64,000 nucleotides of DNA, taken from positions 1-64,000 of the IMG/VR virus record IMGVR_UViG_3300027621_000003. One strand, given 5' to 3'. The translations under genes and the position numbers were made by a program. The notes under the pieces were generated by a model that searched no databases, was not told the DNA's origin, and was given only the letters and a program-made list of their open reading frames with translations. This document shows positions 2,254-59,547 of this stretch, in pieces. Position 1 is the stretch's first letter. Each line of letters begins with the position of its first letter.

Positions 2254-2261
2254 TATAAATA
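2254..2261 (-). promoter_or_regulatory. TATTTATA putative late promoter
   Basis: One of 16 sense-strand TATTTATN copies before gene starts; 5 nt before ATG. Confidence 0.65.
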
Positions 2262-2289
2262 GATGATTATTTTGTTTAGTTAGTTTTGG

Positions 2290-4314
2290 TTATGTTTTTG
2301 ATGTTGCGTTATAATAATTTGAACCAGTTGCTACAGTCAATAGGAAGTTAGGTGTAACCCAAACAACTCTATAAGTTCCACTTGGAACCGCAGCTCCTGA
2401 AGTAACAGTAACGTTAAACGCATTTGTTGATGGCACTAAACTTGGTACTGCCGCCTGTACGTCATCTGCACTTGGTGATGTTCCAACATCCATAACATAA
2501 TTATTTAATGAGCCACCAATACCATCTAAAGGTAACCAAATTGAATAAAAATATGACAAAGTTGGATTTACAACACTAGATGAAACTTGGATGTTAGTAA
2601 ATAAATAATTAATTTGTGATATTGGTCCGCTTAAAGTAACAGGAGTTACGAAATCACTACCACCATTTACAAACGAAGGTTGGTGTGCGTAAATATTTAA
2701 ATCACCACTATAATTTCCTGCTCCATTATTCGGTGGTCCACCTACTGAAAAATAACTATACCATTCTTGAGCATTACTTGCTGTGGCGTAAGCTAATAAA
2801 GTTGCATCAGCTCCACTAGTTTGTGGTTCAGCAAATATGTAAGCCCTAAATGCCGCGCCAGAAGGTGTTGGAGTAGGTGTTTTCGTTGGAGTTAATGTAT
2901 TAGTTGGAGTTAATGTATTAGTTGGAGTTAATGTATTAGTTGGTGTTTGTGTAACTGTTGGTGTATTAGTCGGTGTTTCAGTCAATGTTGGTGTATTAGT
3001 ATTTGTTGGAGTATTAGTTACCGTTGGTGTTTGTGTTGGTGTTAAAGTATTTGTAGGTGTAACAGTGTTTGTCGGAGTAAGTGTATTAGTTGGCGTATTA
3101 GTTGGTGTCTGAGTTACCGTTGGCGTATTTGTTGGTGTTTCAGTAGGTGTTTGAGAAGGTGTTTTAGTCACCGTTGCTGTTACACTTGGTGTTACTGTAT
3201 TAGTTGGTGTCTGAGTTACCGTTGGTGTAACTGTCTTTGTCGGTGTTACACTTGGTGTTACAGTTTTAGTAGGTGTAATTGTGTTAGTTGGTGTAATTGT
3301 ATTGGTTGGTGTAAGCGTATTTGTTGGAGTAAGTGTATTTGTTGGTGTTAATGTTGGTGTAGGTGTCTTAGTATTTGTTGGTGTTACAGTCTGAGTTGGC
3401 GTTTCAGTATTTGTTGGTGTTAAAGTATTTGTTGGTGTTACAGTCTGAGTTGGCGTTTCAGTATTTGTTGGTGTTACTGTTGGAGTTGGTGTATTAGTAG
3501 GTGTTTCAGTATTTGTTGGTGTTAAAGTATTTGTTGGTGTTACAGTCTGAGTTGGCGTTTCAGTATTTGTTGGTGTTACTGTTGGAGTTGGTGTATTAGT
3601 AGGTGTTTCAGTATTTGTTGGTGTTACTGTCTGAGTTGGCGTTTCAGTATTTGTTGGTGTTACTGTCTGAGTTGGCGTTTCAGTATTTGTAGGTGTTACT
3701 GTCTGAGTCGGAGTAAGTGTATTAGTAGGTGTTACTGTCTGAGTTGGCGTTTCAGTATTTGTTGGTGTTACTGTAGGTGTTGATGTTTGAGAAGTTGTTG
3801 GTGTTACTGTAGGTGTTGATGTTGTTGTAACACTTGGTGTAACCGTAGGTGTTACTGTAGGTGTTGATGTTGTTGTAACACTTGGTGTAACCGTAGGTGT
3901 TAAAGTTTCAGTATTAGTTGGTGTTACTGTAGGTGTTGGAGATGGTGTTGTTGGAGCACCTGCGTTAGTGGTGGTTGGTGTTGGTGTTAATGTTGGTGTT
4001 AAAGTGTTGGTTGGCGTTAATGTTGGTGTTGGTGTAACTGTTCGTGTTGGCGTTGGTGTTAATCCTGAACAAGCCGCAGGGTCTGAAAGTATAATTTCAA
4101 CACCATTATACATGTCAGTCCTTGAAGCACCTGTATAAACTGCCGTTGTTCCTGTTGTTCCTGTGTAAATATCAAAAGGACCTACAGCATTATTTACACC
4201 ATCAAATCTTATAATAACACTTTGAGAGCACGCAGTAACTGAGTATTGTGACGAGACAGGGTTATCACAACCGCTTGCCGTATTTACTACAATAATTTCA
4301 TAATTTACCGCCAT
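2290..4314 (-). CDS. Mucin-like Thr-Pro repeat virion/appendage protein
   Basis: 674 aa; about 400 aa of TPT(N/Q/V)T repeats between small globular ends; structural-gene context; TATTTATA at 4333-4340. Confidence 0.8.
2860..4062 (-). repeat. Thr-Pro coding repeat ([12 protein letters not shown]-type units)
   Basis: Near-identical 18/36-nt units such as tcagtatttgttggtgttac. Confidence 0.9.
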
Positions 4315-4396
4315 CTAATTTTTGATTTCCTATATAAATACAAAGACATTATAGTTTTTAAATGAAACTTTAAATAATTTAAAATAAAAGTTAAAA

Positions 4397-4708
4397 TTAA
4401 ATAGTAAAATCACAACTTGGAGGTTCAAGAATAATATTATAAATACAATCTGAAGCAACCACTTGAATTGTAAATCCGCAACCATATCTACACTCAAGAA
4501 TTTTAAATTTTGAACATCCATTAGCATCAGTTATTTTTAACATGATTGCCGGTGCGTTATCAAATAATGTAGGAAGATAAAAATTTTCAACAGGTGGAAC
4601 CGCTCCTCCAATTGTTCCAACAAAGTATTCGTTATTACCATAAACATCAGAAACATACACCTGATATGGTGATGTACCTGTTATTGATATGATTTCTATC
4701 ATTGCCAT
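4397..4708 (-). CDS. Small beta-rich structural protein (SprB-repeat-like)
   Basis: 103 aa; ITGTSPY...ITDANGC resembles one repeat unit of the adjacent SprB-repeat gene, which ends 1 nt away. Confidence 0.65.
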   Translation of the reverse strand: MAMIEIISITGTSPYQVYVSDVYGNNEYFVGTIGGAVPPVENFYLPTLFDNAPAIMLKITDANGCSKFKILECRYGCGFTIQVVASDCIYNIILEPPSCDFTI

Positions 4709-4709
4709 T

Positions 4710-7310
4710 TTAACTCACACAATTAATATCGTATTGGATTATTAGGTCAATTATAATTTGTTGGTTTGCCAATTCACCTTCTGTGGCTATTGTTACAACA
4801 CTTGATACCGTATCTATTGTAACACTACTAACACCTGGTATTGACAATAAAATTGTTTCAACCGCATCATACCATTGTTGATTGGTTGGAATGTCTAATA
4901 ATGTTGTACCCGTATAAAAAGAATCGGTATATGTTACACCACTAACTTCCACTTGAGCAACAAAAGTTGCCGCACTTAATAAACAATTGGTGTGACCAGA
5001 TATAATATCATAATAGCCTTCATTTAACATTTGAAGAATACCTCGTTCAGTCCCTGAAGTATATTGAAATTCTCTTTCACACATTGTGTAAATTTGATAT
5101 GTTGATTCAATTGCTGTACAACTTATAATTGTACTTCTTGCTTGAACACATCCATTATCATCAACTATTGTTAAACTATATGTTCCACCCGTAAGACCTG
5201 TTACAGTTATATTTGGTGGATTACCACTAACATTATCAGACCAAGTAAATGTAAATGGTGGTGTACCTGAACTAATCAATGCCGTGATTGTACCACCTGA
5301 ACCAGTTCCACAACCTGTTGGGTATAAAGAATATTGTAATGGTGTACCGTATGATACCGTAACATTTCCTGATTGAACACAACCTGTTGTATCAGTCACC
5401 GTATAACCATAAGTACCAGTTCCTAATTCACCAAACGTTGCAGCACTAAAACTAGTGTTAACGGACTGACCTGTACTTAATTGATAGGTATATGGTGCGG
5501 TACCACCTGTTGATAATGTAAGTGTAACACTACCATTATTTAAATTACAAGTTGAACCTGAACTTGATGTTGTTACACTATAAAGATTTTCGGCTATGAT
5601 GGTTATTTCTTGTTCATATAAACAACCACTACTATCAGAAACATAAACTGTATAAGTTCCACTTTCCAAATTAACGAACTCATAAGCAGTTGAATTTGAA
5701 ACCGCATTAACTGTTGATGAATCAGGATAAACTAATGTATATGTATATGGAATTTCACCACCGTCTAATGTAATTGATATTTTACCATCACTACTACCAC
5801 AAGTAGAGTTAGTTTGAGTAACAGATAAACTATTAAATGTATTTGGCGTTTGTAAAACTGTTGAAAATGTCGCTTTACATAAAGCTGCGTCAGTAATATC
5901 TACTGAGAATGGTCCTGCCGATAATCCCGAAAAAACATATGATGTTGCATAAGTAATCGCAACGGTACCATTTGAACCTGAATAATAATAAGGCCCAGTT
6001 CCACCAGTTATAGTCAATGTAAGTGAACCATCAGCAACAAAACAAGAAGGTGTAACCGCAGTCCATGAACCTAACCCAATACTTGGGACATAATCTACTG
6101 TAGCCACTTGTGATAATACACAACCATCTGATGATGTTACTGTAACTTCGTAACCACCAGCTGTAAGACCTGTAATAGTATCTCCTGTAATACCATCAGA
6201 CCATTCATAAGTAAACGGAGCGTTACCCGTAACTCCAGTAACATACACTTTTCCTGTTGGACTAGCACATTCGGTGTCATTTACAATATAAAATCCGTAA
6301 TCAAGCGTATTTGATGAATATATTATACAAGTCTCAGAAGTTCCTGAACAACCAGCACAGTCAACTGCTGTTACTGAATAAGTTCCAGCCGATAAATTAT
6401 TAAACGTCCCAATATTTGTTGAGGTTGTTTGTGAATCAGCAAATCCATAAGCAGAATATAAATAATAGTTAATAATATTACAACTTGATGTTGCTGTTAC
6501 CGTCAATGAACCATTATTTAAACCACATGTTGTTGCAACTTCAGTTTGAAATCCAATTGTCAACCCTGAACCAATAACAACGTTAATATAAAATTCGTTA
6601 TTTGTAGGTGCTGTCGAGTCATTTGCTCTAACATAGTAAGTTCCTGCAGGTAAATTTGTTTTGTAGTCACCGGTGCCTAAGTTTGGATTATACCAATCAA
6701 ATGTATAAGGTGGTGTTCCTCCACTAGCGGTAATTAATGCCGAACCCAATCCTGTTTCACAAGCACCTGTAACTGTTAAAGTATATGCAAATGTATTACC
6801 ATTGTTATATGGTGATGATGTTGGTGTTGGAGTTAGTGGAGGTTCCGTTGGCGTAATTGTTGGTGTTATAGTCGGAGTTTGTGTAATTGTTGGTGTTACA
6901 GTCGGAGTTCGTGTAATTGTAGGCGTTTGTGTTAAAGTATTTGTTGGTGTTACAGTCGGAGTTGACGTAATTGTAGGCGTTTGTGTTACACTTGGTGTTT
7001 GTGTCGGTGTATGATTTGGGGTTCTTGTTGGAAATGGTGTTAAAGTAAGTGATGGTGTTGGTTCTGGTTCACAAGGAGGTAATAATAATCCTCCATAATT
7101 TATATATCCTGTTCCACCATCTTCAATATAAACATCGTCACTTGTTGCATAAGAACCACTTGCTTGACAACCACAAACACTATAAAATTGACCAGCACCA
7201 AATAAATTACTTAATAATGTGGTACCATCAGTACAATCATAATAATAAAATGTTTGGTCACTGTCCGATTCATTCCAAACCATCCATCTAATACAAGTAC
7301 TACAAGCCAT
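4710..7310 (-). CDS. SprB-repeat adhesin-like virion protein with Pro-Thr linker
   Basis: About 7 repeats of C-x3-4-G-S-(I/L)-T-(L/V)...GGTxPY(T)Y...GL-x-AG-x-Y-x-V-T-V-T-D-x2-GC, the SprB repeat pattern; Pro/Thr stalk at about residues 82-166. Confidence 0.8.
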   Translation of the reverse strand: MACSTCIRWMVWNESDSDQTFYYYDCTDGTTLLSNLFGAGQFYSVCGCQASGSYATSDDVYIEDGGTGYINYGGLLLPPCEPEPTPSLTLTPFPTRTPNHTPTQTPSVTQTPTITSTPTVTPTNTLTQTPTITRTPTVTPTITQTPTITPTITPTEPPLTPTPTSSPYNNGNTFAYTLTVTGACETGLGSALITASGGTPPYTFDWYNPNLGTGDYKTNLPAGTYYVRANDSTAPTNNEFYINVVIGSGLTIGFQTEVATTCGLNNGSLTVTATSSCNIINYYLYSAYGFADSQTTSTNIGTFNNLSAGTYSVTAVDCAGCSGTSETCIIYSSNTLDYGFYIVNDTECASPTGKVYVTGVTGNAPFTYEWSDGITGDTITGLTAGGYEVTVTSSDGCVLSQVATVDYVPSIGLGSWTAVTPSCFVADGSLTLTITGGTGPYYYSGSNGTVAITYATSYVFSGLSAGPFSVDITDAALCKATFSTVLQTPNTFNSLSVTQTNSTCGSSDGKISITLDGGEIPYTYTLVYPDSSTVNAVSNSTAYEFVNLESGTYTVYVSDSSGCLYEQEITIIAENLYSVTTSSSGSTCNLNNGSVTLTLSTGGTAPYTYQLSTGQSVNTSFSAATFGELGTGTYGYTVTDTTGCVQSGNVTVSYGTPLQYSLYPTGCGTGSGGTITALISSGTPPFTFTWSDNVSGNPPNITVTGLTGGTYSLTIVDDNGCVQARSTIISCTAIESTYQIYTMCEREFQYTSGTERGILQMLNEGYYDIISGHTNCLLSAATFVAQVEVSGVTYTDSFYTGTTLLDIPTNQQWYDAVETILLSIPGVSSVTIDTVSSVVTIATEGELANQQIIIDLIIQYDINCVS

Positions 7311-7337: not shown

Positions 7338-10295
7338 TTACTGACAACTAATGTCTATATTAACCCCCACGTTTATTTGTAAAGTAATTGGTTCTGAACT
7401 TGAAGCACATGTCAAGTTATATATTGTAACCTCATTACCGTTCACATAAAAGAAATAACCATAATTAACTAATTGTTGTAGATTTAAAATAAGCGCTGTC
7501 TTCCATTGGTTATTTGTTGGAACTTGTCCTGTTCCATAACCATCAAAAAATTTATTTTGTATTACAGTTGCCCCATCAATCTTAACATCAACATACCATT
7601 GTGAATACAATGAGTTTGCGTTACAATCTGAAAGTAGATAACCTTGTGTGTCTAAGTAATTGTATAATACGTTATATAGAATTTGTGAGAATGATGTAAC
7701 ATCACCAGGGTTTGCACCAATCCAAGGATATATTGAACATGTTGCACTTTGTTTGGTGCAATCAAAAGAAAATAATTGACTTGTTGCCAAACATGGGTCA
7801 TTTTCAATTGGTACTAATTGACAACCTCTTTGTCTTCTATAAACATATTTTTGTCTTTGTAATGCTGAGTTTTCTAAACGGGTACCAGTATTCCATATTG
7901 TAGATGCTGGAATCATTTGTTGTGTTAATCTAATCCAATATGGACCAAGACCATCAACATATTCAATTAATTTTTGATATGTAAAATCATCATTTGGAAT
8001 TCCAACATTTTGTTCAGAAAGAAGGTAATTGTAAAAAATATTTAATAGTGTTGGATATCCACCAGTTTTACCATCTGTTGAATACCACCTGTCTCTGATA
8101 TTAATTGTATTGTTAACAAATGTTTGAGCGAATTCAAAGAATGTTTTTTTGTTTGCTTCAGGATTAATATATGTCCAATCATAAGTTTCCAAACTTGGGT
8201 ATGGCGATGTCATTCCTGAATTAGGAATTGGGTAATTATAATTCTTGGACATTGACCAAACATTATAAAGGATACCTTGACCAGGGTTCATAAACAAATC
8301 AACATTCTTGGCATTAAGAACTAATTTGTCATCTGAAACTACATAATATGCATTATACCCTGATTCAACACTAACTCTGAATGTTGGTGGTTGCCAACTT
8401 TTTTTATTGTCAGGTACAAGTTTTAAGTTATAACCCAAATTCATATATGGGAAATTCCTGAATCTATCAAAATATTCTTGTCCGTAAGTAAAAGGCTGTA
8501 ATGTTGTTTGAACATTTGGGCTATTGCCAGTAAAAACTGAAGTGGTTTGATTTACAATTTGTGGACTTCTGTGTTGTGGTGTTGATTCAAACCATCCTGC
8601 ACCTTTTTCAAAATAATAATCTGATGTTTCAATTGGTGCTCTTGGATATCCAAATTCATCAACTGGATAATCATCAATTGTTTCACCCACAAAAAAAGTT
8701 TGTGTTGATGATGTAAATGCGGTATATGTTTGACCGTAAATTGAAAATGTATTACCAGTTGCTAATGCTGTTGTATTTTCAATATATGTACCACCTGTAA
8801 TTTGAGCATATTGTTCACCAAATTGTCTCATATTAATTCTTTGGTCAGCAACATAAACGTGTTCATTAAATTCAACCAACGCTTCAGGAGCTCCAACCAA
8901 TCTTAATGTAAATTCAACTGAACGTCTTGTACCTTTAGATTTAAAAAGATATGCCGAGTTTAATATTAAGTTTCTATAAAATTGATAATTTAATTCTGAT
9001 GGTGTAAGTTCTCTTGAAAAACCAGCGTATTGTGTAACACCTGTTGACGAGTATACTGAATCTAAAAAGTTTTCATTCGTAATTGGTGATATGTTTGTAC
9101 TCCATCCTAATGTCTGTGCTAAATTTTTCAATAACATTGATGGTATGTCATTACCTGGAGTATAGTTAACCGAATTCATGTATGCCAACGCATCAATGAA
9201 TTGTTTTATTTGGTCAAAACTTCTTCCATATATTTGTAATACTTTAGCAACTCTATGGTCTGGCGTGTCAAATTCTAAAAATGATTCTGTTGTTAAAAAA
9301 CGGGTAATTAAGTTTGTTTTGAATGAATCAAAATTAATCGCAATTTCATTTAACTTCTCAAGATAAGTTGTAAATAATGGAGTTCTAATATCTAAATTCC
9401 AAAGACCATCTTTAGGCCAAGTCAATGTAGATGTTTGTATTGATACAACACCTGAGTCAGTTTCAACAGGAACATTAAATGTTGCTGTAAATGGTGGTGT
9501 CGCTAATCTATTTAACAAGAACTTTTCAACCTCATCAAAATCTTCCGAAAATCCTTTTTCGGTGTAATATGTGTTTGGTTTAATATAAATTGAATCTACC
9601 GTTGATGAAGCACCACTAAATGGTTGTCCTGTAACAATAAATTTAAGATTACCAGAATATAAACTTGTTGTTGGGTCTAAATCAATAATTGGATATTCAT
9701 TACCATTAACAAACAAACTATAATCTCGGTATCTATTTGTTAAATCCCTAATAGGTGAAAATATTTGTTCTCTGTTTTGAAGATTAATTATAGAATTAAC
9801 TGAGTAATCAATGTTGAATGGATTTTTAATCCTTGCGACATCAATTGTAAATTCAGTTTCATTTGGGACTGAACTATATATAATATTCTCAGCGGTTAAT
9901 CCTGATGTAAAATCATAATAGATTGCATCAACTTCAATTGCCGCAGGAAAAAAGTTTAATATTTTTTGTATTGATACTTCAAATCTTTTTTGTAACGAAC
10001 CAAATATTGTAAAATTAGTTACAACTGATAAATCATAATTTGGATAAACTCTATATTCTTTCGCTAACAACTCCCTTGAAGCGTTTATTGAATCTAAATC
10101 TAAATTTTCTAATGATACTGGATTTTGAAACGTTCCAATATTAAATGTTCTATTTGTTTTTTCTGAAAGTCCTAAATCAAACTCAAAATTACCTTGTGTT
10201 AATCCACCACCTTGCACAGTTTGTAACCCTACGATATTATCAAAGGGAGTTCCGGCTCCTGAAGCCGCTGTGTTAGGTATGAACGTTTTAGCCAT
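7338..10295 (-). CDS. Baseplate wedge protein (T4 gp7 / P2 gpI-like)
   Basis: LKNLAQTLGW...YLFKSKGTRRSVEFTLRLVG matches the gpI/gp7 KGT motif; baseplate context. Confidence 0.65.
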   Translation of the reverse strand: MAKTFIPNTAASGAGTPFDNIVGLQTVQGGGLTQGNFEFDLGLSEKTNRTFNIGTFQNPVSLENLDLDSINASRELLAKEYRVYPNYDLSVVTNFTIFGSLQKRFEVSIQKILNFFPAAIEVDAIYYDFTSGLTAENIIYSSVPNETEFTIDVARIKNPFNIDYSVNSIINLQNREQIFSPIRDLTNRYRDYSLFVNGNEYPIIDLDPTTSLYSGNLKFIVTGQPFSGASSTVDSIYIKPNTYYTEKGFSEDFDEVEKFLLNRLATPPFTATFNVPVETDSGVVSIQTSTLTWPKDGLWNLDIRTPLFTTYLEKLNEIAINFDSFKTNLITRFLTTESFLEFDTPDHRVAKVLQIYGRSFDQIKQFIDALAYMNSVNYTPGNDIPSMLLKNLAQTLGWSTNISPITNENFLDSVYSSTGVTQYAGFSRELTPSELNYQFYRNLILNSAYLFKSKGTRRSVEFTLRLVGAPEALVEFNEHVYVADQRINMRQFGEQYAQITGGTYIENTTALATGNTFSIYGQTYTAFTSSTQTFFVGETIDDYPVDEFGYPRAPIETSDYYFEKGAGWFESTPQHRSPQIVNQTTSVFTGNSPNVQTTLQPFTYGQEYFDRFRNFPYMNLGYNLKLVPDNKKSWQPPTFRVSVESGYNAYYVVSDDKLVLNAKNVDLFMNPGQGILYNVWSMSKNYNYPIPNSGMTSPYPSLETYDWTYINPEANKKTFFEFAQTFVNNTINIRDRWYSTDGKTGGYPTLLNIFYNYLLSEQNVGIPNDDFTYQKLIEYVDGLGPYWIRLTQQMIPASTIWNTGTRLENSALQRQKYVYRRQRGCQLVPIENDPCLATSQLFSFDCTKQSATCSIYPWIGANPGDVTSFSQILYNVLYNYLDTQGYLLSDCNANSLYSQWYVDVKIDGATVIQNKFFDGYGTGQVPTNNQWKTALILNLQQLVNYGYFFYVNGNEVTIYNLTCASSSEPITLQINVGVNIDISCQ

Positions 10296-11203
10296 TATTG
10301 AGCCGTAATATTTTGATAACTTTTACTGAAGTCAATATTTGTACCTCTATTATCTTTAACCTCATACAACAAGTTATTAAAGTCATCTTTAATTTCATAC
10401 AAGTTGAATTGTTGATAAATGTTGTTTTGAGCATCATAGATTGTGTAGATACCATCCTCCATAGATTTAGTTTGATTACCATAAAGAGCAATACCCAATG
10501 TATCAATGTCATATTCAGAAACTTGAACCTCTAACATTAATGGATTGAAGTAAGTATTTGATAATACAATACTCTGAGCTGGTTGTCCAATATATGGTGT
10601 GGCGTTTGGTTTGTTTGTTGGTGATGAACTTGGTGATAAAGTACAAAACACCAAATTAGTTTGACCTTCAGTATATCTATATCTAACAGCCTTTTGTAAA
10701 GTATTAGTTAAATTTTGAATAACAGGCTCACAATAAAAATTTGAAGTAACAATCCTAAAGAAGTTAGGTATTTTACTACCATCAGAGTTTAAATATTCAA
10801 TTCTAAATCCAACAAGTCCTTGAGCAACAAATTTATTAACATATTGACTTGGTACGTTACTTAAATCAATTACAATTCCTTTAACGTTTGGTAATGCTGA
10901 TAACACACCACAATCAGTAATACTTGTTCTAATTTCCGCTGGTCTTATATAAAGAGTGTAGATACCTAATTGAGTGAATGTTTCTGCGGGTAATCTAAGA
11001 TTGTATAAACCACCCAAGATTTCATTTGAGTTTCCGCCAGTTGCTGCATTATTAAAATAAGGTCTTAATATTGTTGTCGCATCCAAAGTGGTTAGAACAA
11101 AATTGTCCGTCACATCTCTTGATGGTGTATAATTCATGACGATACTTACGTCTTCGGGTGATACATCTGCCGGTCTTATTGTACCATAGGTTCCTGTAGC
11201 CAT
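10295..11203 (-). CDS. Hypothetical structural protein
   Basis: 302-aa ORF, stop/start overlap with the downstream gene; TATTTATT upstream. Confidence 0.6.
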   Translation of the reverse strand: MATGTYGTIRPADVSPEDVSIVMNYTPSRDVTDNFVLTTLDATTILRPYFNNAATGGNSNEILGGLYNLRLPAETFTQLGIYTLYIRPAEIRTSITDCGVLSALPNVKGIVIDLSNVPSQYVNKFVAQGLVGFRIEYLNSDGSKIPNFFRIVTSNFYCEPVIQNLTNTLQKAVRYRYTEGQTNLVFCTLSPSSSPTNKPNATPYIGQPAQSIVLSNTYFNPLMLEVQVSEYDIDTLGIALYGNQTKSMEDGIYTIYDAQNNIYQQFNLYEIKDDFNNLLYEVKDNRGTNIDFSKSYQNITAQ

Positions 11204-11246
11204 TTTTTTATTTTATCTATTAGTAATAAATACCATTTTTATTTTT

Positions 11247-19831: not shown

Positions 19832-19905
19832 TCCTTTTACTTTCTATCATAAATAGTTTATACACTATTTTATAATAGTAGTTAAAGAATGAATAAAATA
19901 AATTA

Positions 19906-21752: not shown

Positions 21753-24265
<2,513 letters not shown>

Positions 24266-25677: not shown

Positions 25678-25712
25678 AATTAAAATTCCCTTGTTAGTTT
25701 TGATAAATACTA

Positions 25713-28201: not shown

Positions 28202-28216
28202 ATGTGTTGTAAATTA

Positions 28217-28252: not shown

Positions 28253-28263
28253 GTTTTGTTTTA

Positions 28264-29914: not shown

Positions 29915-29918
29915 TTTT

Positions 29919-30143: not shown

Positions 30144-30165
30144 AACTATAGTTTCTTAATAAATA

Positions 30166-42038: not shown

Positions 42039-42046
42039 TATAAATA
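42039..42046 (-). promoter_or_regulatory. TATTTATA putative late promoter (hub operon)
   Basis: 14 nt upstream of ATG 42024. Confidence 0.65.
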
Positions 42047-43911: not shown

Positions 43912-43933
43912 ATTCTAATAAATAGAATAAAAC

Positions 43934-44084
43934 TTATTTTTGATAAGATTCTATTAATTTGTCCACCATATACCTACGAGCATATGTTGGCATTTTTTGA
44001 AAATCTGTCCAAGACATATGTAAATCTCGGCTCAGAATAAAAAATTCGTCTAATTGAAATTTCCTATATTCAGAAGAAAACCCG
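43934..44084 (-). CDS. Tail assembly chaperone C-terminal extension (frameshift product, lambda gpGT-like)
   Basis: Overlapping +1-frame ORF (GFSSEYRKFQLDEFFILSRDLHMSWTDFQKMPTYARRY...) without a good start of its own, between chaperone and tape measure. Confidence 0.65.
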
Positions 44085-44819: not shown

Positions 44820-44848
44820 AAAAAAACACAGGGAATAGACCCTGTGTT
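44820..44848 (-). terminator. Intrinsic terminator-like hairpin after the tube gene
   Basis: AACACAGGG-TCTATT-CCCTGTGTT followed by a T-run that abuts the chaperone ATG. Confidence 0.65.
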
Positions 44849-44896
44849 AAATATACCATATTAAATTAATTTATCAATATAAAATAAAATACAAAA

Positions 44897-45385: not shown

Positions 45386-45426
45386 GGTATATTTTTTTTT
45401 TAGTTTTTTGTTTTAGTTTATTTATT

Positions 45427-45434
45427 TATAAATA
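45427..45434 (-). promoter_or_regulatory. TATTTATA putative late promoter (tail tube)
   Basis: 41 nt upstream of the tube ATG, followed by an A-rich leader. Confidence 0.6.
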
Positions 45435-45488
45435 CTCGTTGTTTGAAAATTTTTGTGTTTACTTTGATTTTTTAAAAATTATGATTCT

Positions 45489-46325
45489 TTAGTATCTGGT
45501 TTTAGTTCCTCCAGCAGTATAATAAGTCTTTAATACTGGTTCATCTTTAAAACTCTTCTTCATTACTTCTACATTCTTTAAGTCATCATCTGAAAAACCA
45601 ATACTAGGCACAAATTTATTTTTCACATCATCTTTAACATATAATTTTTTACCCATTTCTTTAGCCTGTCCTTTTACATATGAAATAAATTCTTTCATTG
45701 CTTGGACTTTTAATTCCTCGGGGTTGGCGGCTCCTGCGTCTGTACCAAAACTAACAGGATAATATTTGTTCATATCCATATAGTCTTTTATTAATTCCAT
45801 ATCCGATTTGTCCTCCATATTTGAAAGGTCACGGAATTTTCTAAGATTCTTAATTAATAAGTCTTTATTAATACCCATATGGTCAGAAATAATAAGATTA
45901 TAAATTGCGTCTTTAATTGTCTCGGGGTTGTGTCCACGTGCGGTGATTATTGAAAAAATTGACCCGTTGTTGATTGCCTCCACAAAATCAGACCAAGCGG
46001 GACCTGGTTTACCTTTCATGGTATCAATTTTAAATTGTTTATCACCACCCGTTCTAAAATTACGAAAAGGTTCGTCAGAATATCCAACTATTTTACTACC
46101 TTTGTAATCAAATGGTTCTACACCAATTTCACTTCTATATTCTGCAAAATCTTCTGTAGACATACCAACTTCATTGTCATTTTCATCTTTAACAATAATT
46201 TTTGTTGGCATCATCATGATATTATCATCCCAATCAAAGGCATAATATTTCATGTCAGGCGTACCAACATCATCAAAACCTTCAAGTAATGATGATGTTG
46301 GATTTAGTATTTTTTTTCTAATCAT
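45489..46325 (-). CDS. HAD-superfamily phosphatase
   Basis: Motif I AFDWDDNI, motif II IITARGH, conserved Lys, motif IV GFSDDDLKN. Confidence 0.8.
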   Translation of the reverse strand: MIRKKILNPTSSLLEGFDDVGTPDMKYYAFDWDDNIMMMPTKIIVKDENDNEVGMSTEDFAEYRSEIGVEPFDYKGSKIVGYSDEPFRNFRTGGDKQFKIDTMKGKPGPAWSDFVEAINNGSIFSIITARGHNPETIKDAIYNLIISDHMGINKDLLIKNLRKFRDLSNMEDKSDMELIKDYMDMNKYYPVSFGTDAGAANPEELKVQAMKEFISYVKGQAKEMGKKLYVKDDVKNKFVPSIGFSDDDLKNVEVMKKSFKDEPVLKTYYTAGGTKTRY

Positions 46326-46332
46326 TTAAAGA

Positions 46333-49300: not shown

Positions 49301-49527
49301 TCATATTTTGGGATTTGAGTGTTTACAAATTTTTCGGGGATGGTTCCACCGAAATATGATTCAAAATCATTATAATTTGTAATGAAGATTGGTTCGAAAG
49401 CCGGACCTGTTAATGTCTCCCCAACAAGACCAAGAGTGGTTACCCCCACACTTTGAGCTACGAAGCTAAGGTCTCTCTCTGATGTGTATACACCAGGAGA
49501 TACGAATACTTTATTTGATACTGCCAT
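46333..49527 (-). CDS. Contractile tail sheath protein (T4 gp18-like)
   Basis: FVSPGVYTSERDLS, GPAFEP, PWFATAGYTRG, LYQGRINPI, IWGNKTLQ, LNRINVRRLL, KPTKALEFIDIEF. Confidence 0.96.
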   Translation of the reverse strand: MAVSNKVFVSPGVYTSERDLSFVAQSVGVTTLGLVGETLTGPAFEPIFITNYNDFESYFGGTIPEKFVNTQIPKYELAYIAKSYLQQSNQLFVTRVLGLSGYDAGSSWSITTIANVDGSTVGLSVSTGTTYSVTFTGTTGGTAITYTSSFPSIIQTGNTYTQYNGGVSTITTDLYNQIQTIINNSGTTSGASAYIFGTVSTSDYNSLLPGYTAQTNVYNVSGLSVYDADFTSPSDDTWYYANFDITTGDTYTGYSFFNVVSAMTDLGSGNYSGTITGKTYTYSGTAYEGWNDVVVATLRSRGVSLFTSDYHGPQYQITGTTDVIIDNSGSYSGISQNPFAQFAISGYTDNAETPDSFSFVASMNSNDTNYITKVFGISNFGKNRVETPLFVEEQFQTMLTYGYNKGYIRGINSSLISLPGLRNPVTTGTIANYLEQYQSPESPWVVSELNGSTVERLFKFYSIADGNSANTQIKISIQNISFNNLSFDIAVRDFFDTDANPVVIEKYTNCTMDPTNNNYVGVKIGTSDGEYSLNSKYIMLEMNTEANPESVPCGFEGYVIRTYGSATSPFPVYKVAYNFPGEVIYNPPFGIVTNPPFSYTGFDNKAVSGGDKVRSTYLGISSQIGYDPLFFEYKGKQKPLDLCVEGDALPWDTVTKGFHMDSGATVVNIAYGTTSGTPAFDCGVASFQSDPETPANPYFQIQARKFTLLLQGGFDGWDIYSESRTNTDRFILGGSGYQAGACPTTRYPNATGWGAFKPIAISNFTDYSNTDYYAYLLGINTFANPEAVNINVFATPGIDYVNNSNLVEDSISMVTFDRADSIYICTTPDTAMFVPVTNIADFIYPTEAVNNLDNTGIDSNYTATYYPWILVRDTVNNTQIYIPPTNEVCRNLALTDNISFPWFATAGYTRGLVNAVKARKKLTQEDRDTLYQGRINPIATFSDVGTVIWGNKTLQIADTALNRINVRRLLLQARKLISAVAVRLLFEQNDAKVRQDFLDSVNPILDAIRRDRGLYDFRVTVSNSPEDLDRNTMSGKIYLKPTKALEFIDIEFLITPTGASFENI

Positions 49528-49561
49528 TTTGTTTTAGTTATTCAGTTTTATTTATTTTATA

Positions 49562-49569
49562 GATAAATA
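49562..49569 (-). promoter_or_regulatory. TATTTATC putative late promoter (tail sheath)
   Basis: 34 nt upstream of the sheath ATG. Confidence 0.6.
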
Positions 49570-49618
49570 TTAACAGATTTAAGAAAAACTTTACTTTACG
49601 CCATCTATTTATAATATG

Positions 49619-49647
49619 GGCAGATTATTTTCTGCCTTTATTCTACC
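49619..49647 (+). promoter_or_regulatory. Operator-like repeats upstream of the small DNA-binding gene
   Basis: GGCAGA-N6-TCTGCC inverted pair plus TCTACC 11 nt later, ending 1 nt before ATG 49649. Confidence 0.45.
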
Positions 49648-49648
49648 T

Positions 49649-49804
49649 ATGGAAAAGAAAATAAAGAATTTGAAGATATCAATAGAGTCACACGATATTT
49701 TAAAGAAATACTGTGAAAAACACGGTATTAAGATGTATAGATTTTTGGAAAATTTGATTAAAGAAAAATGTCAAACTAAAAAAGACATTTATGGTGAATC
49801 ATGA
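49649..49804 (+). CDS. Small ribbon-helix-helix-like DNA-binding protein
   Basis: MEKKIKNLKISIESHDILKKYCEKHGIKMYRFLENLIKEKC shows a beta-strand plus two helices pattern. Start moved from 49616 to ATG 49649. Confidence 0.6.
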   Translation: MEKKIKNLKISIESHDILKKYCEKHGIKMYRFLENLIKEKCQTKKDIYGES

Positions 49805-50923
49805 GTGGGGATTCCCATTTGAGTTTGGTTGTGGTGGAACATCATAATTTACACCAAACAATTTGATTGCGTAATTGAATGTTGATGGTAATGTTGCATC
49901 GGGTCTACTTGTAACAACAAGTCTTAAAGTATCGTTGGTATTGACTTGTATTAATGAAACATCACTACCATAAAAATCAAAAGTTAATTGTCCTTGTGGT
50001 TTTATATACACATCAAAATCGGTAATATTTATTTTTGTTAGTAAATTAAAATCACCCGTATAATCAACCATTAAATCAGTTTGTGTTGACCCACTTGGTA
50101 CAGAAACACTTAAATTATATTCATCAATATTTTCGGGGTATTTTTTTCTTTTTGGTCTTGATGTTTGAGCAGATACTTCAAAAGTATTTAACACACGAGA
50201 AACCGCAGGGGCAACTTCAAACTCATCTTCATCCAATAAAAATCCTAACATGGTGAATTCATAATTTTGGATGTAGAATCTTCTTCTTTGAACATCAACA
50301 ACTGATTCATCAGAAATGGTACCCATAATAATTGGAATGTAATGACCGTTGATTTGTCTATAGGCTTGTCTTGACGCAAAAGTTTGAATCACATTTTTGT
50401 TAAACTCATTTAACTCCCTCATTCTATTACAAACAATTTTTACATTATAGGTAATATCAACAGGAACGGGTTGTGGAATTTTATAAATGTCCAAACCTTT
50501 GATGTTTCCATTCCAAGACGGAACGGCTGCGTAAAAATATTCTTTTCTGTTTGGAATATTATAAATGATTGCGGGATTGCTTCCGTATTTAACTTCAGGT
50601 TGACGAACAACCGTAATAAAAGGTAATGTTGGATTACCATTCAAATCTTGAATGTTCCAAGTTTCTGTAAATTGAGCCCAGTTTTGTGTAGTAATAATTA
50701 AATCAATCATTGGTATTATACTACCAGCGACCGTTGTTTGCAAATCTTCTTTAACAAAATCTAAAAACCCCCTATCTAACTCGGGATGCATTAATGACTT
50801 TGGTAAAAAAGTTCCATCTTTTTTAATATCTTCAAGCAATTGTTCTCTACGAGCCAAAAGAATTTTTTCTGGCTTGAGATTGATGGTTGGAATAATCTCT
50901 TTTCGTTTTCTTGGTAATGCCAT
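49799..50923 (-). CDS. Tail terminator / sheath stabiliser (T4 gp15-like)
   Basis: LPFITVVR...PQPVPVDITYNVKI...ELNEF...YEFTMLGFL; upstream of the sheath gene. Confidence 0.65.
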   Translation of the reverse strand: MALPRKRKEIIPTINLKPEKILLARREQLLEDIKKDGTFLPKSLMHPELDRGFLDFVKEDLQTTVAGSIIPMIDLIITTQNWAQFTETWNIQDLNGNPTLPFITVVRQPEVKYGSNPAIIYNIPNRKEYFYAAVPSWNGNIKGLDIYKIPQPVPVDITYNVKIVCNRMRELNEFNKNVIQTFASRQAYRQINGHYIPIIMGTISDESVVDVQRRRFYIQNYEFTMLGFLLDEDEFEVAPAVSRVLNTFEVSAQTSRPKRKKYPENIDEYNLSVSVPSGSTQTDLMVDYTGDFNLLTKINITDFDVYIKPQGQLTFDFYGSDVSLIQVNTNDTLRLVVTSRPDATLPSTFNYAIKLFGVNYDVPPQPNSNGNPHS

Positions 50924-51438
50924 TATAATCCCATAAATTCGTTTTCACTTGCAGGTGTTGCAGTGTAAGAAAAGTAAAATCCTTTATATCCACCATAAGT
51001 GTGTTTATTGTCATAGTCAGGAATACCTGCGTCCATTATTGAATAATACCTAACTTCGGATTCTGTTATCCAATACCCGATATAATCACCCAATTCAATA
51101 TCAACTTGTAAATCAGCGAGTTCTTGTTTATAAACGGAAAACTTTAACAAACCAGGTTCATTTTGAATAATTTTACTACTACCTAAAAATTGACTTGACG
51201 CTTCTTCAATCCTAACATAAGCATTAATTGATACGGGTGCTAAAAATTGTATTCCGTTTTGTTGTACCTCACCGTAAACATCATCATTAACTGTTTTTGT
51301 TCTATCAACCTTGTAAAGTACAATGGTAAAATTCATATCCCCACCAAGCCATTCACGACCCATAGAAATATCTAATGAGAAATCTTCCCCACCAAAAAAT
51401 TTACCTAATCTTGTAATTGGAACGAGTTGTTGTGCCAT
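50923..51438 (-). CDS. Head closure / neck protein (T4 gp14-like)
   Basis: LYKVD...DDVYGE, IELGDYIGY...RYYSI; coupled to the gp15-like gene. Confidence 0.6.
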   Translation of the reverse strand: MAQQLVPITRLGKFFGGEDFSLDISMGREWLGGDMNFTIVLYKVDRTKTVNDDVYGEVQQNGIQFLAPVSINAYVRIEEASSQFLGSSKIIQNEPGLLKFSVYKQELADLQVDIELGDYIGYWITESEVRYYSIMDAGIPDYDNKHTYGGYKGFYFSYTATPASENEFMGL

Positions 51439-51440
51439 AC

Positions 51441-51469
51441 TTGATAAATATACATAAATTGATTATCTT
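51441..51469 (+). promoter_or_regulatory. Sigma70-like promoter of the SNF2 gene, overlapping a divergent TATTTAT motif
   Basis: TTGATA-N17-TATCTT, 8 nt before the TTG start; minus-strand TATTTATC at 51443-51450. Confidence 0.5.
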
Positions 51470-53260: not shown

Positions 53261-53268
53261 TATTTATA
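53261..53268 (+). promoter_or_regulatory. TATTTATA putative late promoter (SOD fusion)
   Basis: The motif switches strand with gene orientation; 29 nt upstream of ATG. Confidence 0.65.
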
Positions 53269-53297: not shown

Positions 53298-54842
53298 ATG
53301 AAGAATCTTAAAAATAGGATTGAAGTAATTGAAGAAGATTTACAAAAAAAAGAAGTTAAAAGACAACAAGAACAAAAAGTACAAAAAGTTGTCGCAGAAG
53401 CCAAAAACATTAAGATAGAAAAATTACCCTATTCTTATGCCGCACTAAAACAATTTATTGACCCCGAAACCATGAGTGTTCATTATAACAAACACTACAA
53501 AGGTTATGTTGATAAATTAAACGGAGCATTAAAAGATGATGAGGATTTAACCTTAGAAGAAATTGTTAAAACAATAGACAGTTTCAACAAATTCATTAGA
53601 AACAATGCGGGTGGTGCCTACAACCACCAATTGTTTTGGAAAATGTTAACACCAAAAACAACAAAACCGGGTCCAATCACACTTAAAAAAATTAATCAGA
53701 GTTTTTCATCATTTGCCGACTTTAAAAAGAAATTTGAAGGTCAATCAAAAGATAGGTTTGGTTCAGGATGGTGTTGGTTAGTTCTTACAAAACGAGGAAC
53801 CTTAAAAATTATGACAACCGCGAATCAAGACAATCCACTTATGGATGTTGTTGACCAAGGTGGTTATCCAATTTTAGGTTTGGATTTATGGGAACACGCA
53901 TATTATCTAAAATATAGAAATAGGAAAGACGAATACGTAAAAAACTTTTGGAGAGTTGTTAATTGGGACTACGTAGAGTCAGAACTTTCAAGAAAGTTAG
54001 ATAAAACAGTAAAAGAATCTACAACCGCTAAAGAATTTTTGACCGAAGCGGTTAAAAGTGAACCCTGTTCAACCCAAGATAAGATGGCATCAAAGTTATT
54101 GTTTAATACAAACAGAGATGTTCTTAATCTATACAAGAATGCCATCATGCAAATTTTAAAAGATACATTTGCTGATAGATACTACAACAAAGATGAATAC
54201 GAAAAAGGACAAATGTCGGGTGTTTATAATTTGGAAGGTAAAGGAAGGTCAGTTATAAATTATTTAAACACAAACTACAGTGCATTTTGTGTATTGAAAA
54301 AAGATATAAACAAATATCTTACAAAAGTAGGTGAGGAACCTATTATTTTTTCAGATAAAACACCAAAAGAACAAGTTATTGAAATGGCAAGAATGTTGAA
54401 GGTTTTAAACAAAGTTAAGTTTAGAGTATTCTCATTGGAGTCTGAAACATTAAAGACAGTTATGAGTGTAATGGGTGTAACATCAGACAAAGGTAATAAA
54501 ACTGAAGACGCTGTTGTTGAAAAACTAAAAAAACAATTTGGTGATGAAAATGTAACTCGTATTGGTGAACTTGGAAACAAAGAAGATATGATGACGGGTG
54601 TTGATGTTAAGATTATGGTTGATGGTGTTGAAAAAACCGCACAGGTAAAACCATTCAGTCACATAACAAGAAATGATGACATGTATAAAGTTGACGGAAC
54701 CGCAAATGTTAAAAAATATCAAACAAATTGGATGATTTTTATGAAACGTTTGGATGATATGGTAATCTTTGATAATTCAAATACAAAAATCATTGACGGA
54801 GTTTATTATTTCCTAATTGATGCCAAGTTGTATCAATTATAA
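53298..54842 (+). CDS. sodA: Mn/Fe superoxide dismutase fused to a C-terminal PD-(D/E)XK-like domain
   Basis: LPYSYAAL...HYNKH, GGAYNHQLFW, FGSGWCWL, NQDNP, DLWEHAYY (all four metal ligands; GG and NQD indicate Mn type). C-terminal GNKTE...D-x3-GVD...AQVK. Confidence 0.88.
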   Translation: MKNLKNRIEVIEEDLQKKEVKRQQEQKVQKVVAEAKNIKIEKLPYSYAALKQFIDPETMSVHYNKHYKGYVDKLNGALKDDEDLTLEEIVKTIDSFNKFIRNNAGGAYNHQLFWKMLTPKTTKPGPITLKKINQSFSSFADFKKKFEGQSKDRFGSGWCWLVLTKRGTLKIMTTANQDNPLMDVVDQGGYPILGLDLWEHAYYLKYRNRKDEYVKNFWRVVNWDYVESELSRKLDKTVKESTTAKEFLTEAVKSEPCSTQDKMASKLLFNTNRDVLNLYKNAIMQILKDTFADRYYNKDEYEKGQMSGVYNLEGKGRSVINYLNTNYSAFCVLKKDINKYLTKVGEEPIIFSDKTPKEQVIEMARMLKVLNKVKFRVFSLESETLKTVMSVMGVTSDKGNKTEDAVVEKLKKQFGDENVTRIGELGNKEDMMTGVDVKIMVDGVEKTAQVKPFSHITRNDDMYKVDGTANVKKYQTNWMIFMKRLDDMVIFDNSNTKIIDGVYYFLIDAKLYQL

Positions 54843-54850: not shown

Positions 54851-54858
54851 TATTTATA
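54851..54858 (+). promoter_or_regulatory. TATTTATA putative late promoter (neck gene)
   Basis: 11 nt upstream of ATG 54870. Confidence 0.65.
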
Positions 54859-54869: not shown

Positions 54870-55985
54870 ATGGTAGTTATTGCTGAACCAGAAAGAACCA
54901 AACTGTATAACAGGATTTTAAATCAACTTGGAGCTCCATTAAGAGCTGTGGAATTAGAATTTGAAATGATGGATTCATTACTTGAATTATCCATCGGTGA
55001 CTATACGCAATATCTTTATGACTGGTTAATTGAATCACAATGGACAACATTGTATGGTATGAATTTGGATACCCAATCAGTAGCAAATGCTTTAATTAGA
55101 CGAAGTCTTGATTGGGAAACACAATACACTTACGCATATTCTAAAATTGTTGGTCTTCAAAACTCAGGTCCTTGGGTACTTAAAAAGGATTACTTTGAAT
55201 TACAACAAAATGTACAAATATATGAAATACCTGCGGGTCGTGAAATTAACGAACTTTTATGGTATTCACCAGCCGAGCAAAACAATTTGTTATTTGACCC
55301 TTTTTCATTGGGTAGTCTTGGTGGTATAGGTGGATTTGGTGGTGTAGGTGGGTTTGCTCAAGCGGGTAACGGTGGAGGATATTTTATGTTATCATCTTAT
55401 GATGTGTTAGCAAGACAACAAGACTTAAATCTTAAAAGAAGAATTATTCAACCCGATGTTAGTTATCGTGTAACAGCACTTCCCGATGGAAAAAGAGCGG
55501 TTATGTTGTATAACACACCTGGTGGTAGATTTGACTTTGGTGATAATGAATTAATGAGAGGCCGTGTTTGGTATTGGTATTATGACACAACTGATGCTGA
55601 CAGAGACCAATGTCTTAAAGATAATCCCGATATCGTAAAATTACCATCAGACATTCCATTAGACGAATTAAGCTGGATTGATTTAAACGACCCTGCAAGA
55701 CAATGGGTTAGAAGATGGTTCACCGCATACTGCAAAGAGACCTTGGCTCGTGTAAGGGGTAAATTCAGTGGTAATTTGAAGACACCTGATAGTGAATTAA
55801 CAATGGATTATCAGTCTCTTCAAACCGAAGCTAAAGATGAAAAAGTTTCTTTAGTGACAGAACTCCAACTAAGATTAGAAAGATTACGTCCTGAAAAACA
55901 AATGGAAAAAGAAGGTTCTATTGCTGAAAATTTAAACAAGCAATTAAAATATAGAGCAATGCCAATACCAATAACTGTTGTATAA
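54870..55985 (+). CDS. Neck / head-tail adaptor protein (T4 gp13-like)
   Basis: RILNQLGAPLRAVEL and WVRRWFTAYCKETLARVRGKF parallel the T4 gp13 N- and C-terminal motifs. Confidence 0.8.
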   Translation: MVVIAEPERTKLYNRILNQLGAPLRAVELEFEMMDSLLELSIGDYTQYLYDWLIESQWTTLYGMNLDTQSVANALIRRSLDWETQYTYAYSKIVGLQNSGPWVLKKDYFELQQNVQIYEIPAGREINELLWYSPAEQNNLLFDPFSLGSLGGIGGFGGVGGFAQAGNGGGYFMLSSYDVLARQQDLNLKRRIIQPDVSYRVTALPDGKRAVMLYNTPGGRFDFGDNELMRGRVWYWYYDTTDADRDQCLKDNPDIVKLPSDIPLDELSWIDLNDPARQWVRRWFTAYCKETLARVRGKFSGNLKTPDSELTMDYQSLQTEAKDEKVSLVTELQLRLERLRPEKQMEKEGSIAENLNKQLKYRAMPIPITVV

Positions 55986-59034: not shown

Positions 59035-59104
59035 TTCTATAAATTTTAACCGAGTGACCTATTATCTTCCGTAAAATACGGAGTTTGTCTTACTCATTGG
59101 TTAA

Positions 59105-59133
59105 AGTATAGGTATTGGATTTAACCTCGTCAA
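59105..59133 (-). promoter_or_regulatory. Sigma70-like promoter of the DNA polymerase gene
   Basis: TTGACG-N17-TATACT followed by a structured leader of about 65 nt. Confidence 0.7.
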
Positions 59134-59531
59134 CAACAAGGACTATCTATAATAAAACTTTCTTGAACATTGATATATAACTCATCTCTTAATGGTAGAA
59201 TAAGATTTCCTTCAATTCCACCTAAAAGACCATTATTATATTTAATCAAAAATTGTCCAACATAACGACCAACACTATTTGTATCACGAGATGTGAATTT
59301 AAAATATACGTAATACTCAGGTAATGCATTTGAGTCGTCATTAACCACTTCTACAATATACGCAGGTTTTGAAACAATTTTTGGTATTCCTGTTGCTTCA
59401 TCAATCATAGAAAAGAAAATTGACGCACTACCTAAAGAATCCATAAAAGATTGGTATTCACTTCTACCGTCTCTTACCACTTGCATTTTTAAAAGTGGTA
59501 ATGTCGCGTTTTTCTTAATATTAAATTCCAT
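59130..59531 (-). CDS. Ig-like virion protein (BppU N-terminal-like)
   Basis: FNIKKNATLPLLKMQV...YFKFTSRDTNSVGRYVGQFLIKY...LILP; TATTTATA 4 nt upstream. Confidence 0.6.
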   Translation of the reverse strand: MEFNIKKNATLPLLKMQVVRDGRSEYQSFMDSLGSASIFFSMIDEATGIPKIVSKPAYIVEVVNDDSNALPEYYVYFKFTSRDTNSVGRYVGQFLIKYNNGLLGGIEGNLILPLRDELYINVQESFIIDSPCC

Positions 59532-59547
59532 TACATATAAATACTCA

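Follow-up and report, generated by a model that had tools for sequence, protein, structure and literature searches.

The 64,000-nucleotide (nt) window analyzed here is the first part of IMG/VR record IMGVR_UViG_3300027621_000003 (G000), a viral genome of 294,914 bp with 32% GC and an estimated completeness of about 98%. Our subject is the heptamer TATTTAT, which lies in sense orientation just upstream of many of its genes and which probably acts as a promoter. PHROG scans of the window identified genes for a tail fiber, baseplate wedge and hub proteins, a tail tube and a T4-like tail sheath, together with genes for a DnaB-type helicase, a ribonucleotide reductase (RNR), an exonuclease, a UvsX-like recombinase, SSB, an SNF2-type helicase and a family-B DNA polymerase (polB). 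A megablast search with positions 42 to 52 kb of the window against a phage collection gave no match, and in tblastn the only matches of the sheath protein were distant sheaths of T4-like phages and cyanophages, none above 37% identity. The record also encodes, on the opposite strand within its capsid-portal-terminase region, the ribosomal protein bS21, the hallmark of the freshwater "bS21 phages," whose predicted hosts are Bacteroidetes (Chen et al. 2022, PMC9723584). This gene points to a Bacteroidota host, in line with the near absence of Shine-Dalgarno sequences (GGAG upstream of 9/358 genes) and with the recovery of the window region, nearly complete, in 14 freshwater or lake DNA runs from 14 studies. 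We conclude that the phage is a T4-distant, bS21-encoding, myovirus-like phage infecting freshwater Bacteroidota.

The raw number of TATTTAT copies in the window is at expectation (38 against 39 in shuffled sequence), and the signal is positional. A sense copy lies no more than 50 nt upstream of 16 of the 42 window genes, against 1.4 ± 1.2 expected under a first-order Markov model (maximum of 7 in 2000 simulations), and 19 of the 38 copies fall in or at the edge of intergenic DNA, which makes up 2.2% of the window, while the intragenic copies show no strand bias (11 sense, 8 antisense). Genome-wide, TATTTAT is the commonest 7-mer in the 50 nt upstream of genes, with 81 sense copies against 12.2 ± 3.7 expected (maximum of 26), a positional excess of about 19 standard deviations; the 20 other 7-mers made of five T and two A have 9 to 34 copies each in the same regions. 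One-mismatch variants of TATTTAT were not enriched upstream of genes anywhere in the genome, indicating that the heptamer is strict. The strand-specific placement claimed in a first-pass annotation, which had proposed a genome-wide check of strand bias, was confirmed by that check: the 81 sense copies face 32 antisense copies, 12 of which are the sense promoter of a divergent neighbor. All 16 sites listed in that annotation are present, 13 on the minus and 3 on the plus strand, its minus-strand coordinates being 1 lower since the trailing N of TATTTATN had been counted in, and its spacing of 4 to 41 nt is close to the heptamer-to-ATG spacers of 3 to 42 nt that we measured.

A logo of 84 sites contained no conserved -35 or -33 element, and its information was confined to the heptamer, apart from T being weakly avoided on the immediate 5' side of the box and A being preferred to T on the immediate 3' side. 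Consistently, TTG-N18-21-TATTTAT occurred 6 times in sense and 4 times in antisense orientation. Terminator-like hairpins with a T run were found within 60 nt upstream of 12/84 sites, compared to 10/277 control genes. Our literature search found no published TATTTAT phage promoter, and the paper defining the bS21 phage group mentions neither promoters nor sigma factors (PMC9723584).

The distance from TATTTAT to an ATG that opens 50 codons or more is most often 4, 5 or 6 nt (18, 22 and 9 genes, respectively). This peak is sharp and has an abrupt lower cutoff, while longer distances tail off to about 45 nt, 41 of the 84 sites lying 9 to 60 nt from the ATG. Among sites with a leader of at least 9 nt, 33 of 41 have A as the sixth base downstream of the motif (background, 0.5), and in sites with a 5-nt spacer the A of the ATG falls exactly on this sixth base. 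Taking this A as the predicted +1 would place the box at -12 to -6. The genome contains a second class of box, TATCTTTG, which is the Bacteroidota -7 box TAnnTTTG and often has TTG about 19 to 20 nt upstream. In Flavobacterium johnsoniae this box reads T-12 A-11 .. T-8 T-7 T-6 G-5, and transcription starts 4 to 5 nt after it (PMC6847099). From the first T to the A of the ATG there are 12 nt in both the modal TATTTAT-N5 and the TATCTTTG-N4 arrangements, and 13 and 11 nt for TATTTAT-N6 and TATTTAT-N4. It is chiefly on this common register that we base our view of TATTTAT as a -10-type element, and it leads us to predict leaderless or nearly leaderless mRNAs for about 49 TATTTAT genes and 25 host-type genes, TATTTAT-N4/5/6-ATG preceding 49 open reading frames (ORFs) of at least 50 codons and TAnnTTTG-N4-ATG preceding 25. 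The remaining TATTTAT genes would have leaders of 8 to 45 nt. An earlier suggestion that several of the mRNAs are nearly leaderless is thus strengthened by the sharp spacing, the conserved A and the register of the host -7 box.

TATTTAT heads the operons of all recognizable virion genes. In the window it precedes the fiber, wedge protein, tube, sheath and giant-ORF units, and outside it the box is found at 108703 before a hypothetical gene leading into the major capsid gene, at 109763 before the prohead protease gene and at 120756 before a tight gene string ending in the TerL and portal genes. Two of these motif-headed pairs, the hypothetical gene with the capsid gene and the protease gene with its downstream gene, match pairs that RNA read profiles showed to be co-transcribed in related bS21 phages (capsid with the upstream hypothetical gene, protease with the downstream one; PMC9723584). 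The three giant ORFs, all on the minus strand (30166-36855, 2229 amino acids [aa]; 37165-42024, 1619 aa; 14783-19831, 1682 aa), gave no PHROG, Pfam or PDB sequence match; they are conserved in the distant relative G001 (see below) and stand behind TATTTAT, and they are probably virion proteins, among which, given this lack of matches, a hidden crAss-type virion polymerase or another divergent virion-packaged enzyme could be present. As had been noted earlier, the SSB, UvsX (recA), exonuclease, RNR, SNF2-like helicase and polB genes lack the box while the DnaB-like helicase gene carries it; for RNR this absence is to be qualified, as only 26 nt separate its gene from the preceding helicase gene, whose promoter may serve both. 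The box also precedes many small genes without known function, and it heads a 19-kb plus-strand non-structural block (84-103 kb) with PhoH, glycosyltransferases and a 245-aa sigma factor gene. At the start of this block, two divergent boxes stand back to back at 83983 (-) and 83996 (+) (G000:C1:83969-84002), between a 1314-aa gene (80027-83971) and the sigma-containing plus block. The description of the motif as preceding late genes therefore fits the virion operons, but not as an exclusive rule, since the helicase, the small genes and the non-structural block are headed by it as well.

The search for a gp55-like sigma factor, which the first-pass annotation had called for, did return a divergent one, encoded by the 245-aa ORF G000:C1:96505-97242, which matched phrog_234 (T4 gp55 family) with an E value of 8e-5. 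A word search found more than 7,900 homologues of this protein; its family comprises 1086 clusters at 50% identity, and every member seen with a source name is labeled hypothetical. All matches of the family profile in the PDB were sigma factors, gp55 among them, and hhalign aligned the protein colinearly with gp55 residues 6-124 (E = 1.4e-4, probability 53%), whereas phmmer with the single sequence against the PDB gave nothing meaningful. The AlphaFold2 model (predicted local distance difference test score of 91) superimposed on gp55 in the T4 open complex (7d7c_F) with a Z score of 10.9 and a root mean square deviation of 3.4 over 114 residues, and its other top structural matches were all sigma factors. 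Plain Foldseek gave E values of 0.04 or above only, with sigma factors in 49 of the 50 top rows. Over its C-terminal 90 residues, the protein aligns with domain 4 of sigma factors of the ECF and sigma-70 types. No match was obtained to phrog_12791, another late-sigma family. On these grounds, we consider the protein a putative gp55-family sigma factor with a remote sequence link and a domain 2 that is predicted to be gp55-like.

Directly after the sigma gene lies a conserved gene for a 123-aa protein (G000:C1:97272-97643, +), always behind TATTTAT, whose product is modeled as a two-helix hairpin with an acidic C-terminal tail and is a candidate sigma partner or regulator. We compared the spacer between these two genes in 80 IMG/VR relatives whose sigma is 67 to 93% identical (64 distinct sequences). 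TATTTAT was invariant in 80/80, nearly always 4 nt from the ATG of the gene for a 120- to 124-aa protein, while the nucleotides separating the box from the stop codon of the sigma gene varied in sequence and in number (4 to 35). In the intermediate relatives L117-L119, found with the sigma P0201 (35% identical to the present one), the syntenic site reads (C)TATTTAT with leaders of about 20 to 25 nt; locus searches starting from the single distant sigmas P0167 and P0149 returned no loci. A more distant syntenic relative of 134 kb (G001) shares 56 reciprocal orthologues with G000, and its sigma is 28 to 31% identical. There, TATTTAT was not enriched upstream (7 versus 6), and the top upstream 7-mer was CTATTTA, with 21 sense and 4 antisense copies out of 39 in the whole sequence and leaders of 13 to 45 nt. 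Among the orthologues, 7 have their box in both genomes, 10 in G000 only, 2 in G001 only and 37 in neither (Fisher p = 0.002), and those with a box in both include the genes for the sheath and the baseplate wedge, the operon of the giant ORFs and the gene preceding that of the capsid protein. The core conserved among relatives is TATTTA in sense orientation. Flanks that shift together with the sigma around a common core are expected of a sigma-promoter pair, and they count against a role in ribosome binding.

TATTTAT is not the only promoter-like element of this genome. The box TATCTTTG has 66 copies, 17 of them 4 nt before ORFs of at least 50 codons, and the examples at about 103 to 260 kb, outside the window, mostly precede small genes, as a rule at exactly 4 nt from the ATG (167945-167952 [-], 170054-170061 [+], 188718-188725 [+]). 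This class probably consists of early promoters read by the host enzyme and likewise placed for leaderless mRNAs, while the loose host consensus TTG-N17-21-TAnnTTTG showed no clear strand bias (17 versus 11). A further set of bipartite sites resembles those of Escherichia coli: TTGACG-N17-TATAAT before the SSB gene (window 29145-29173, -), which opens the SSB-UvsX-exonuclease string without TATTTAT; TTGACG-N17-TATACT before polB (59105-59133, -), also without TATTTAT; and TTGATA-N16-TATATT before the baseplate hub gene (44850-44877, -), which again has no TATTTAT. TTGAC-N16-19-TAnnnT occurred 11 times in sense and 2 times in antisense orientation, although this is only a handful of sites. They may form a third, middle class served by a second sigma factor of the phage, a 266-aa protein of the primary type (G000:C1:251215-252015, -) with regions 1.2, 2 and 4 and strong Sigma70_r2 and r4 scores. 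Its gene belongs to an operon preceded by a strong host-type promoter, TATCTTTG with TTTG 19 nt upstream, and is conserved in the relatives and in G001. No match to the Pfam RNA polymerase beta and beta' models was found in the genome; the Pfam T7-type RNA polymerase model gave none either, but as the control also failed to match, this result is uninformative.

Taken together, we read TATTTAT as a promoter of the gp55 type, late or middle-late, whose consensus is new, which would often give leaderless mRNAs and which is likely read by the 245-aa sigma, and we give this reading a probability of roughly 65%; promoter activity, start site, timing and sigma pairing are here all predicted from sequence. 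The DNA would be melted at the box (-12 to -6) by the core RNA polymerase of the host, equipped with a phage sigma in place of the host primary sigma; needing neither a -35 nor a -33 element, this enzyme would start at the A six bases downstream; where the box lies 4 to 6 nt before the ATG, the transcript would be leaderless or nearly so. The two-domain sigma encoded at 96505-97242 would be the most likely reader, on account of the missing -35 partner, of the TTGACG/TATAAT-like sites that are better suited to a sigma with region 4, and of the analogy with T4. We assign the box to a late or middle-late class because it would drive all recognizable virion operons plus some other genes. The proposal of a distinct phage promoter without a -35 element and with a divergent phage sigma is thus supported in silico, the box heading virion operons and differing from the host-type promoters; as for its reader, the gp55-like sigma exists, while the pairing is a prediction in a phage that also encodes the 266-aa sigma.

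RNA from lakes fits transcription starts shortly after the box, though it is not decisive. Six lake metatranscriptome runs contained part of the region, and their assembled contigs were placed on window positions 43800-49700, where coverage of the tube and sheath genes is uneven, as RNA would give. Over the sheath gene the longest contigs end at 49547 and 49537 (predicted +1, 49557; box, 49563-49569), and the tube gene contigs, among those listed, reach no further than 45409 (predicted +1, 45422). The tube and sheath contigs thus end 10 to 13 nt inside the predicted starts, and among those listed none crosses its box.

Several observations weigh against the reading of the box as a gp55-type promoter served by the 245-aa sigma. 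The sequence link to gp55 is weak, with the hhalign probability given above and an E value of 0.23 for the PDB profile, and the protein carries a sigma-4-like C-terminal domain that is absent from gp55, yet no -35 element is seen. The gp45 clamp family phrog_223 had no match in the genome at E ≤ 10, other clamp families not having been searched for, and no gp33 homologue was found, the 123-aa sigma neighbor being the only protein tested (hhalign against T4 gp33, probability 0.1%); the sigma-4-like domain might replace gp33. There is also a bootstrap problem, as the box at 83996 is the sole recognizable promoter upstream in the co-directional block of the sigma gene, unless an unrecognized promoter exists. 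The presence of the box before the helicase and many small genes weakens the case for lateness, and the site at 49606 is the least secure of the 16, its 3-nt spacer being too short for the proposed geometry. Finally, the low-depth contig X16 (43800-44039) crosses the site 43918-43924, and assembled contigs can show neither 5' ends nor strand and may include DNA carry-over.

The alternative that survives best, though we hold it to be unlikely, keeps TATTTAT as a promoter but has it read by the 266-aa primary-type sigma, made early from its host-type promoter, with the gp55-like protein having another target or acting as a cofactor. The strong region 2 and region 4 scores of this sigma, its conservation in the relatives and G001 and its early availability behind TATCTTTG all suit that role, and on this reading the 245-aa sigma gene would face no bootstrap problem. 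A canonical region 4, however, should use a -35 element, of which TATTTAT sites show none, and the TTGACG-N17-TATAAT-like sites before SSB and polB fit this sigma better; moreover, one strict AT-rich box without a -35 element before virion genes is the gp55-type architecture (PMC2988020).

We consider it improbable that TATTTAT is a weak or variant host promoter, that is, a degenerate -7 box used by the host primary or an alternative sigma without any phage factor. It does agree with the host box TAHHTTTG in register and at T-12, A-11, T-8 and T-6, and two TATTTAT sites stand in tandem directly after a TATCTTTG box. However, T-7 and G-5, nearly invariant in the host box (PMC6847099), are replaced, TATTTAT having A at -7 and no preference for G at -5, and the -33 TTG is missing. 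Variants bridging the two boxes by one mismatch are not enriched, the two classes head different gene sets, and the box becomes CTATTTA in the relative whose gp55-like sigma is only 28 to 31% identical.

Still less probable is that the heptamer works in the mRNA, as a ribosome-recruiting or translation-enhancing signal in a host without Shine-Dalgarno pairing, perhaps for ribosomes carrying bS21. The peak at 4 to 6 nt does resemble Shine-Dalgarno spacing in a genome nearly devoid of such sequences, and the phage encodes bS21, proposed to favor phage messages late in infection (PMC9723584). Against this, 41 of 84 sites lie 9 to 60 nt from the ATG and the motif of the relatives 13 to 45 nt upstream, A is conserved six bases downstream wherever the ATG falls, and the host promoter box stands at an equal spacing; in addition, terminators stand directly upstream of many sites, and the listed sheath and tube RNA contigs end short of the motifs. 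Chance in the AT-rich DNA between genes, or a sequence linked to RNA processing or to terminators, would accommodate the unenriched window-wide count and the base composition, but we rejected this reading on the statistics, namely the excess of about 19 standard deviations, the lack of any 7-mer of the same composition behaving alike and the invariance in 80 relatives within a variable spacer.

Some further features concern the promoters or their surroundings. At G000:C1 ~181-195 kb lies a run of small paralogous genes starting MKIIITES.., all of which have a terminator hairpin and a TATTTAT of their own; before two of them (boxes 181382 and 182856), TATCTTTG is fused directly ahead of TATTTAT, which suggests dual early and late promoters. 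The bS21 gene (G000:C1:110261-110497, +) and its divergent neighbor (109764-110210, -) share a 50-nt intergenic region with neither TATTTAT nor TAnnTTTG; their promoter differs from those of the surrounding virion genes, though they are reported to be co-expressed late. Between the SSB and UvsX genes, a near-perfect palindrome (window 28202-28263; ATGTATGGTATCATGTACGGTACCATACATGAT) may be an operator or an RNA hairpin. The tail fiber gene (window 1-2248) has a higher GC content (43%) and collagen-like repeats that give long overlapping ORFs in several frames. Outside the window, tRNA-like sequences in several intergenic regions at G000:C1 ~130-139 kb and 146-156 kb suggest tRNA clusters. The 16 window sites are listed in Table 1.

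Table 1. TATTTAT sites of the window, with the genes they precede, the predicted start sites and the box before the G001 orthologue
Site	Strand	Spacer to ATG (nt)	Gene or operon behind the box	Predicted +1	G001 orthologue
2255..2261	-	6	Tail fiber gene 2-2248 (ATG at 2248)		
4334..4340	-	19	Gene 2290-4314 (674 aa, phrog_15511)	A 4328	
11226..11232	-		Operon 10295-11203, 7338-10295, 4710-7310 (Hoc-like Ig domain), 4397-4708	A 11220	
19849..19855	-		Operon of 1682-aa gene 14783-19831 and three downstream genes	A 19843	
22220..22226	-	5	Baseplate wedge gene 21753-22214, then wedge gene 19906-21747	A of ATG (22214), hence predicted leaderless	CTATTTA
25703..25709	-	25	DnaB-like helicase gene 24292-25677, then after 26 nt RNR gene 22406-24265		
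30159..30165	-	15	Small gene 29919-30143, then 29240-29926, then terminator-like hairpin 29185-29211		
42040..42046	-		Giant-gene operon 37165-42024 (1619 aa), 36845-37165, 30166-36855 (2229 aa)		CTATTTA
43918..43924	-	6	Gene 42073-43911 (612 aa)		
45428..45434	-	42	Tail tube gene 44897-45385	A 45422	
49563..49569	-	35	Tail sheath gene 46333-49527	A 49557	CTATTTA
49606..49612	+	3	62-aa ORF 49616-49804		
51444..51450	-	5	Gene 50923-51438, then 49799-50923	A of ATG (51438)	
53261..53267	+	30	Gene 53298-54842 (514 aa)	A 53273	
54851..54857	+	12	Gene 54870-55985 (weak head-tail adaptor match)		CTATTTA
59537..59543	-	5	Gene 59130-59531 (133 aa)	A of ATG (59531)	CTATTTA

What these data chiefly add is a transcription map covering an entire clade, and a prediction of leaderless expression on an unexpectedly large scale. 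The bS21 jumbo phages are abundant in lakes, and an easily scanned box gives a map of transcription units for this entire uncultured clade, separating late from early among hundreds of ORFs without known function. A sigma-promoter pair that has diverged from that of T4 (TATTTAT, CTATTTA and TATAAATA) would be useful for understanding how gp55-type sigmas read the -10 box, and the predicted mass leaderless expression beside a phage bS21 bears on translation start in Bacteroidota and on why phages carry bS21. Going further, one can speculate that the TATTTA-core promoter and the two-domain 245-aa sigma represent an undescribed sigma-promoter family (1086 clusters at 50% identity) common to abundant jumbo phages of freshwater Bacteroidota and, in the bS21 clade, tuned to leaderless late mRNAs that the phage bS21 would favor, an extension that we regard as doubtful. 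If it were true, placement of the transcription start and remodeling of the ribosome would form one late-expression system in a phylum without Shine-Dalgarno pairing.

Among known systems, the closest is late transcription in T4, where gp55 acts with gp33 and the gp45 clamp on the host core polymerase at about 50 promoters (PMC2988020, PMC7892883). The two share a single strict AT-rich box near -10 without a -35 element, tens of copies (about 80 here) on either strand before virion genes, a small phage sigma with a domain 2 modeled as gp55-like and, as predicted here, the host core polymerase. They differ in the consensus, TATTTAT[A/T] with the heptamer at -12 to -6 rather than TATAAATA at -13 to -6, in the added sigma-4-like domain, in the lack of detected gp33 and gp45 homologues, in the setting of about half of the promoters for leaderless mRNAs and in the host, Bacteroidota instead of Enterobacteria. 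In the 100 nt upstream of genes, TATAAATA itself occurs 19 times in sense and 45 times in antisense orientation, the antisense copies being largely the reverse complement of TATTTATA. The motif had indeed been described at first as the reverse complement of the T4 late promoter, and the letters of TATTTATA and TATAAATA do correspond, but only for the 56% of sites followed by A; this is probably a coincidence with no evident mechanistic meaning, and we gave it no mechanistic weight.

With the primary-sigma promoters of Bacteroidota (-33 TTTG/-7 TAnnTTTG; PMC6847099), TATTTAT has in common the T-12, A-11, T-8, T-6 register and the distance to the start, and this same class, as TATCTTTG, serves another gene set of the phage. 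In F. johnsoniae, 87% of transcripts have leaders of more than 10 nt (PMC6847099), unlike the 25 host-type and about 49 TATTTAT promoters that stand at leaderless distance here. TATTTAT further departs from the Bacteroidota promoters in its A at -7, the absence of G-5 and of a -33 element and the genes it precedes, and it can be described as a two-position variant of the -7 box.

In the Bacillus phage SPO1, a sigma cascade of gp28 followed by gp33/gp34 recognizes bipartite promoters with -35 and -10 elements. The present phage would resemble SPO1 in having successive promoter classes tied to phage sigmas, here two sigmas and at least two, possibly three, classes. The Thermus phages phiYS40 and P23-45 produce leaderless middle and late transcripts from promoters without a -35 element. 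Their reader is the sigma A holoenzyme of the host, altered by phage proteins, and leaderless mRNAs are common in that host. Lack of a -35 element and many transcripts predicted to begin at AUG are features that the present phage would share with them, whereas its likely reader is a sigma of its own, and its Bacteroidota host belongs to a phylum that mostly uses leadered mRNAs.

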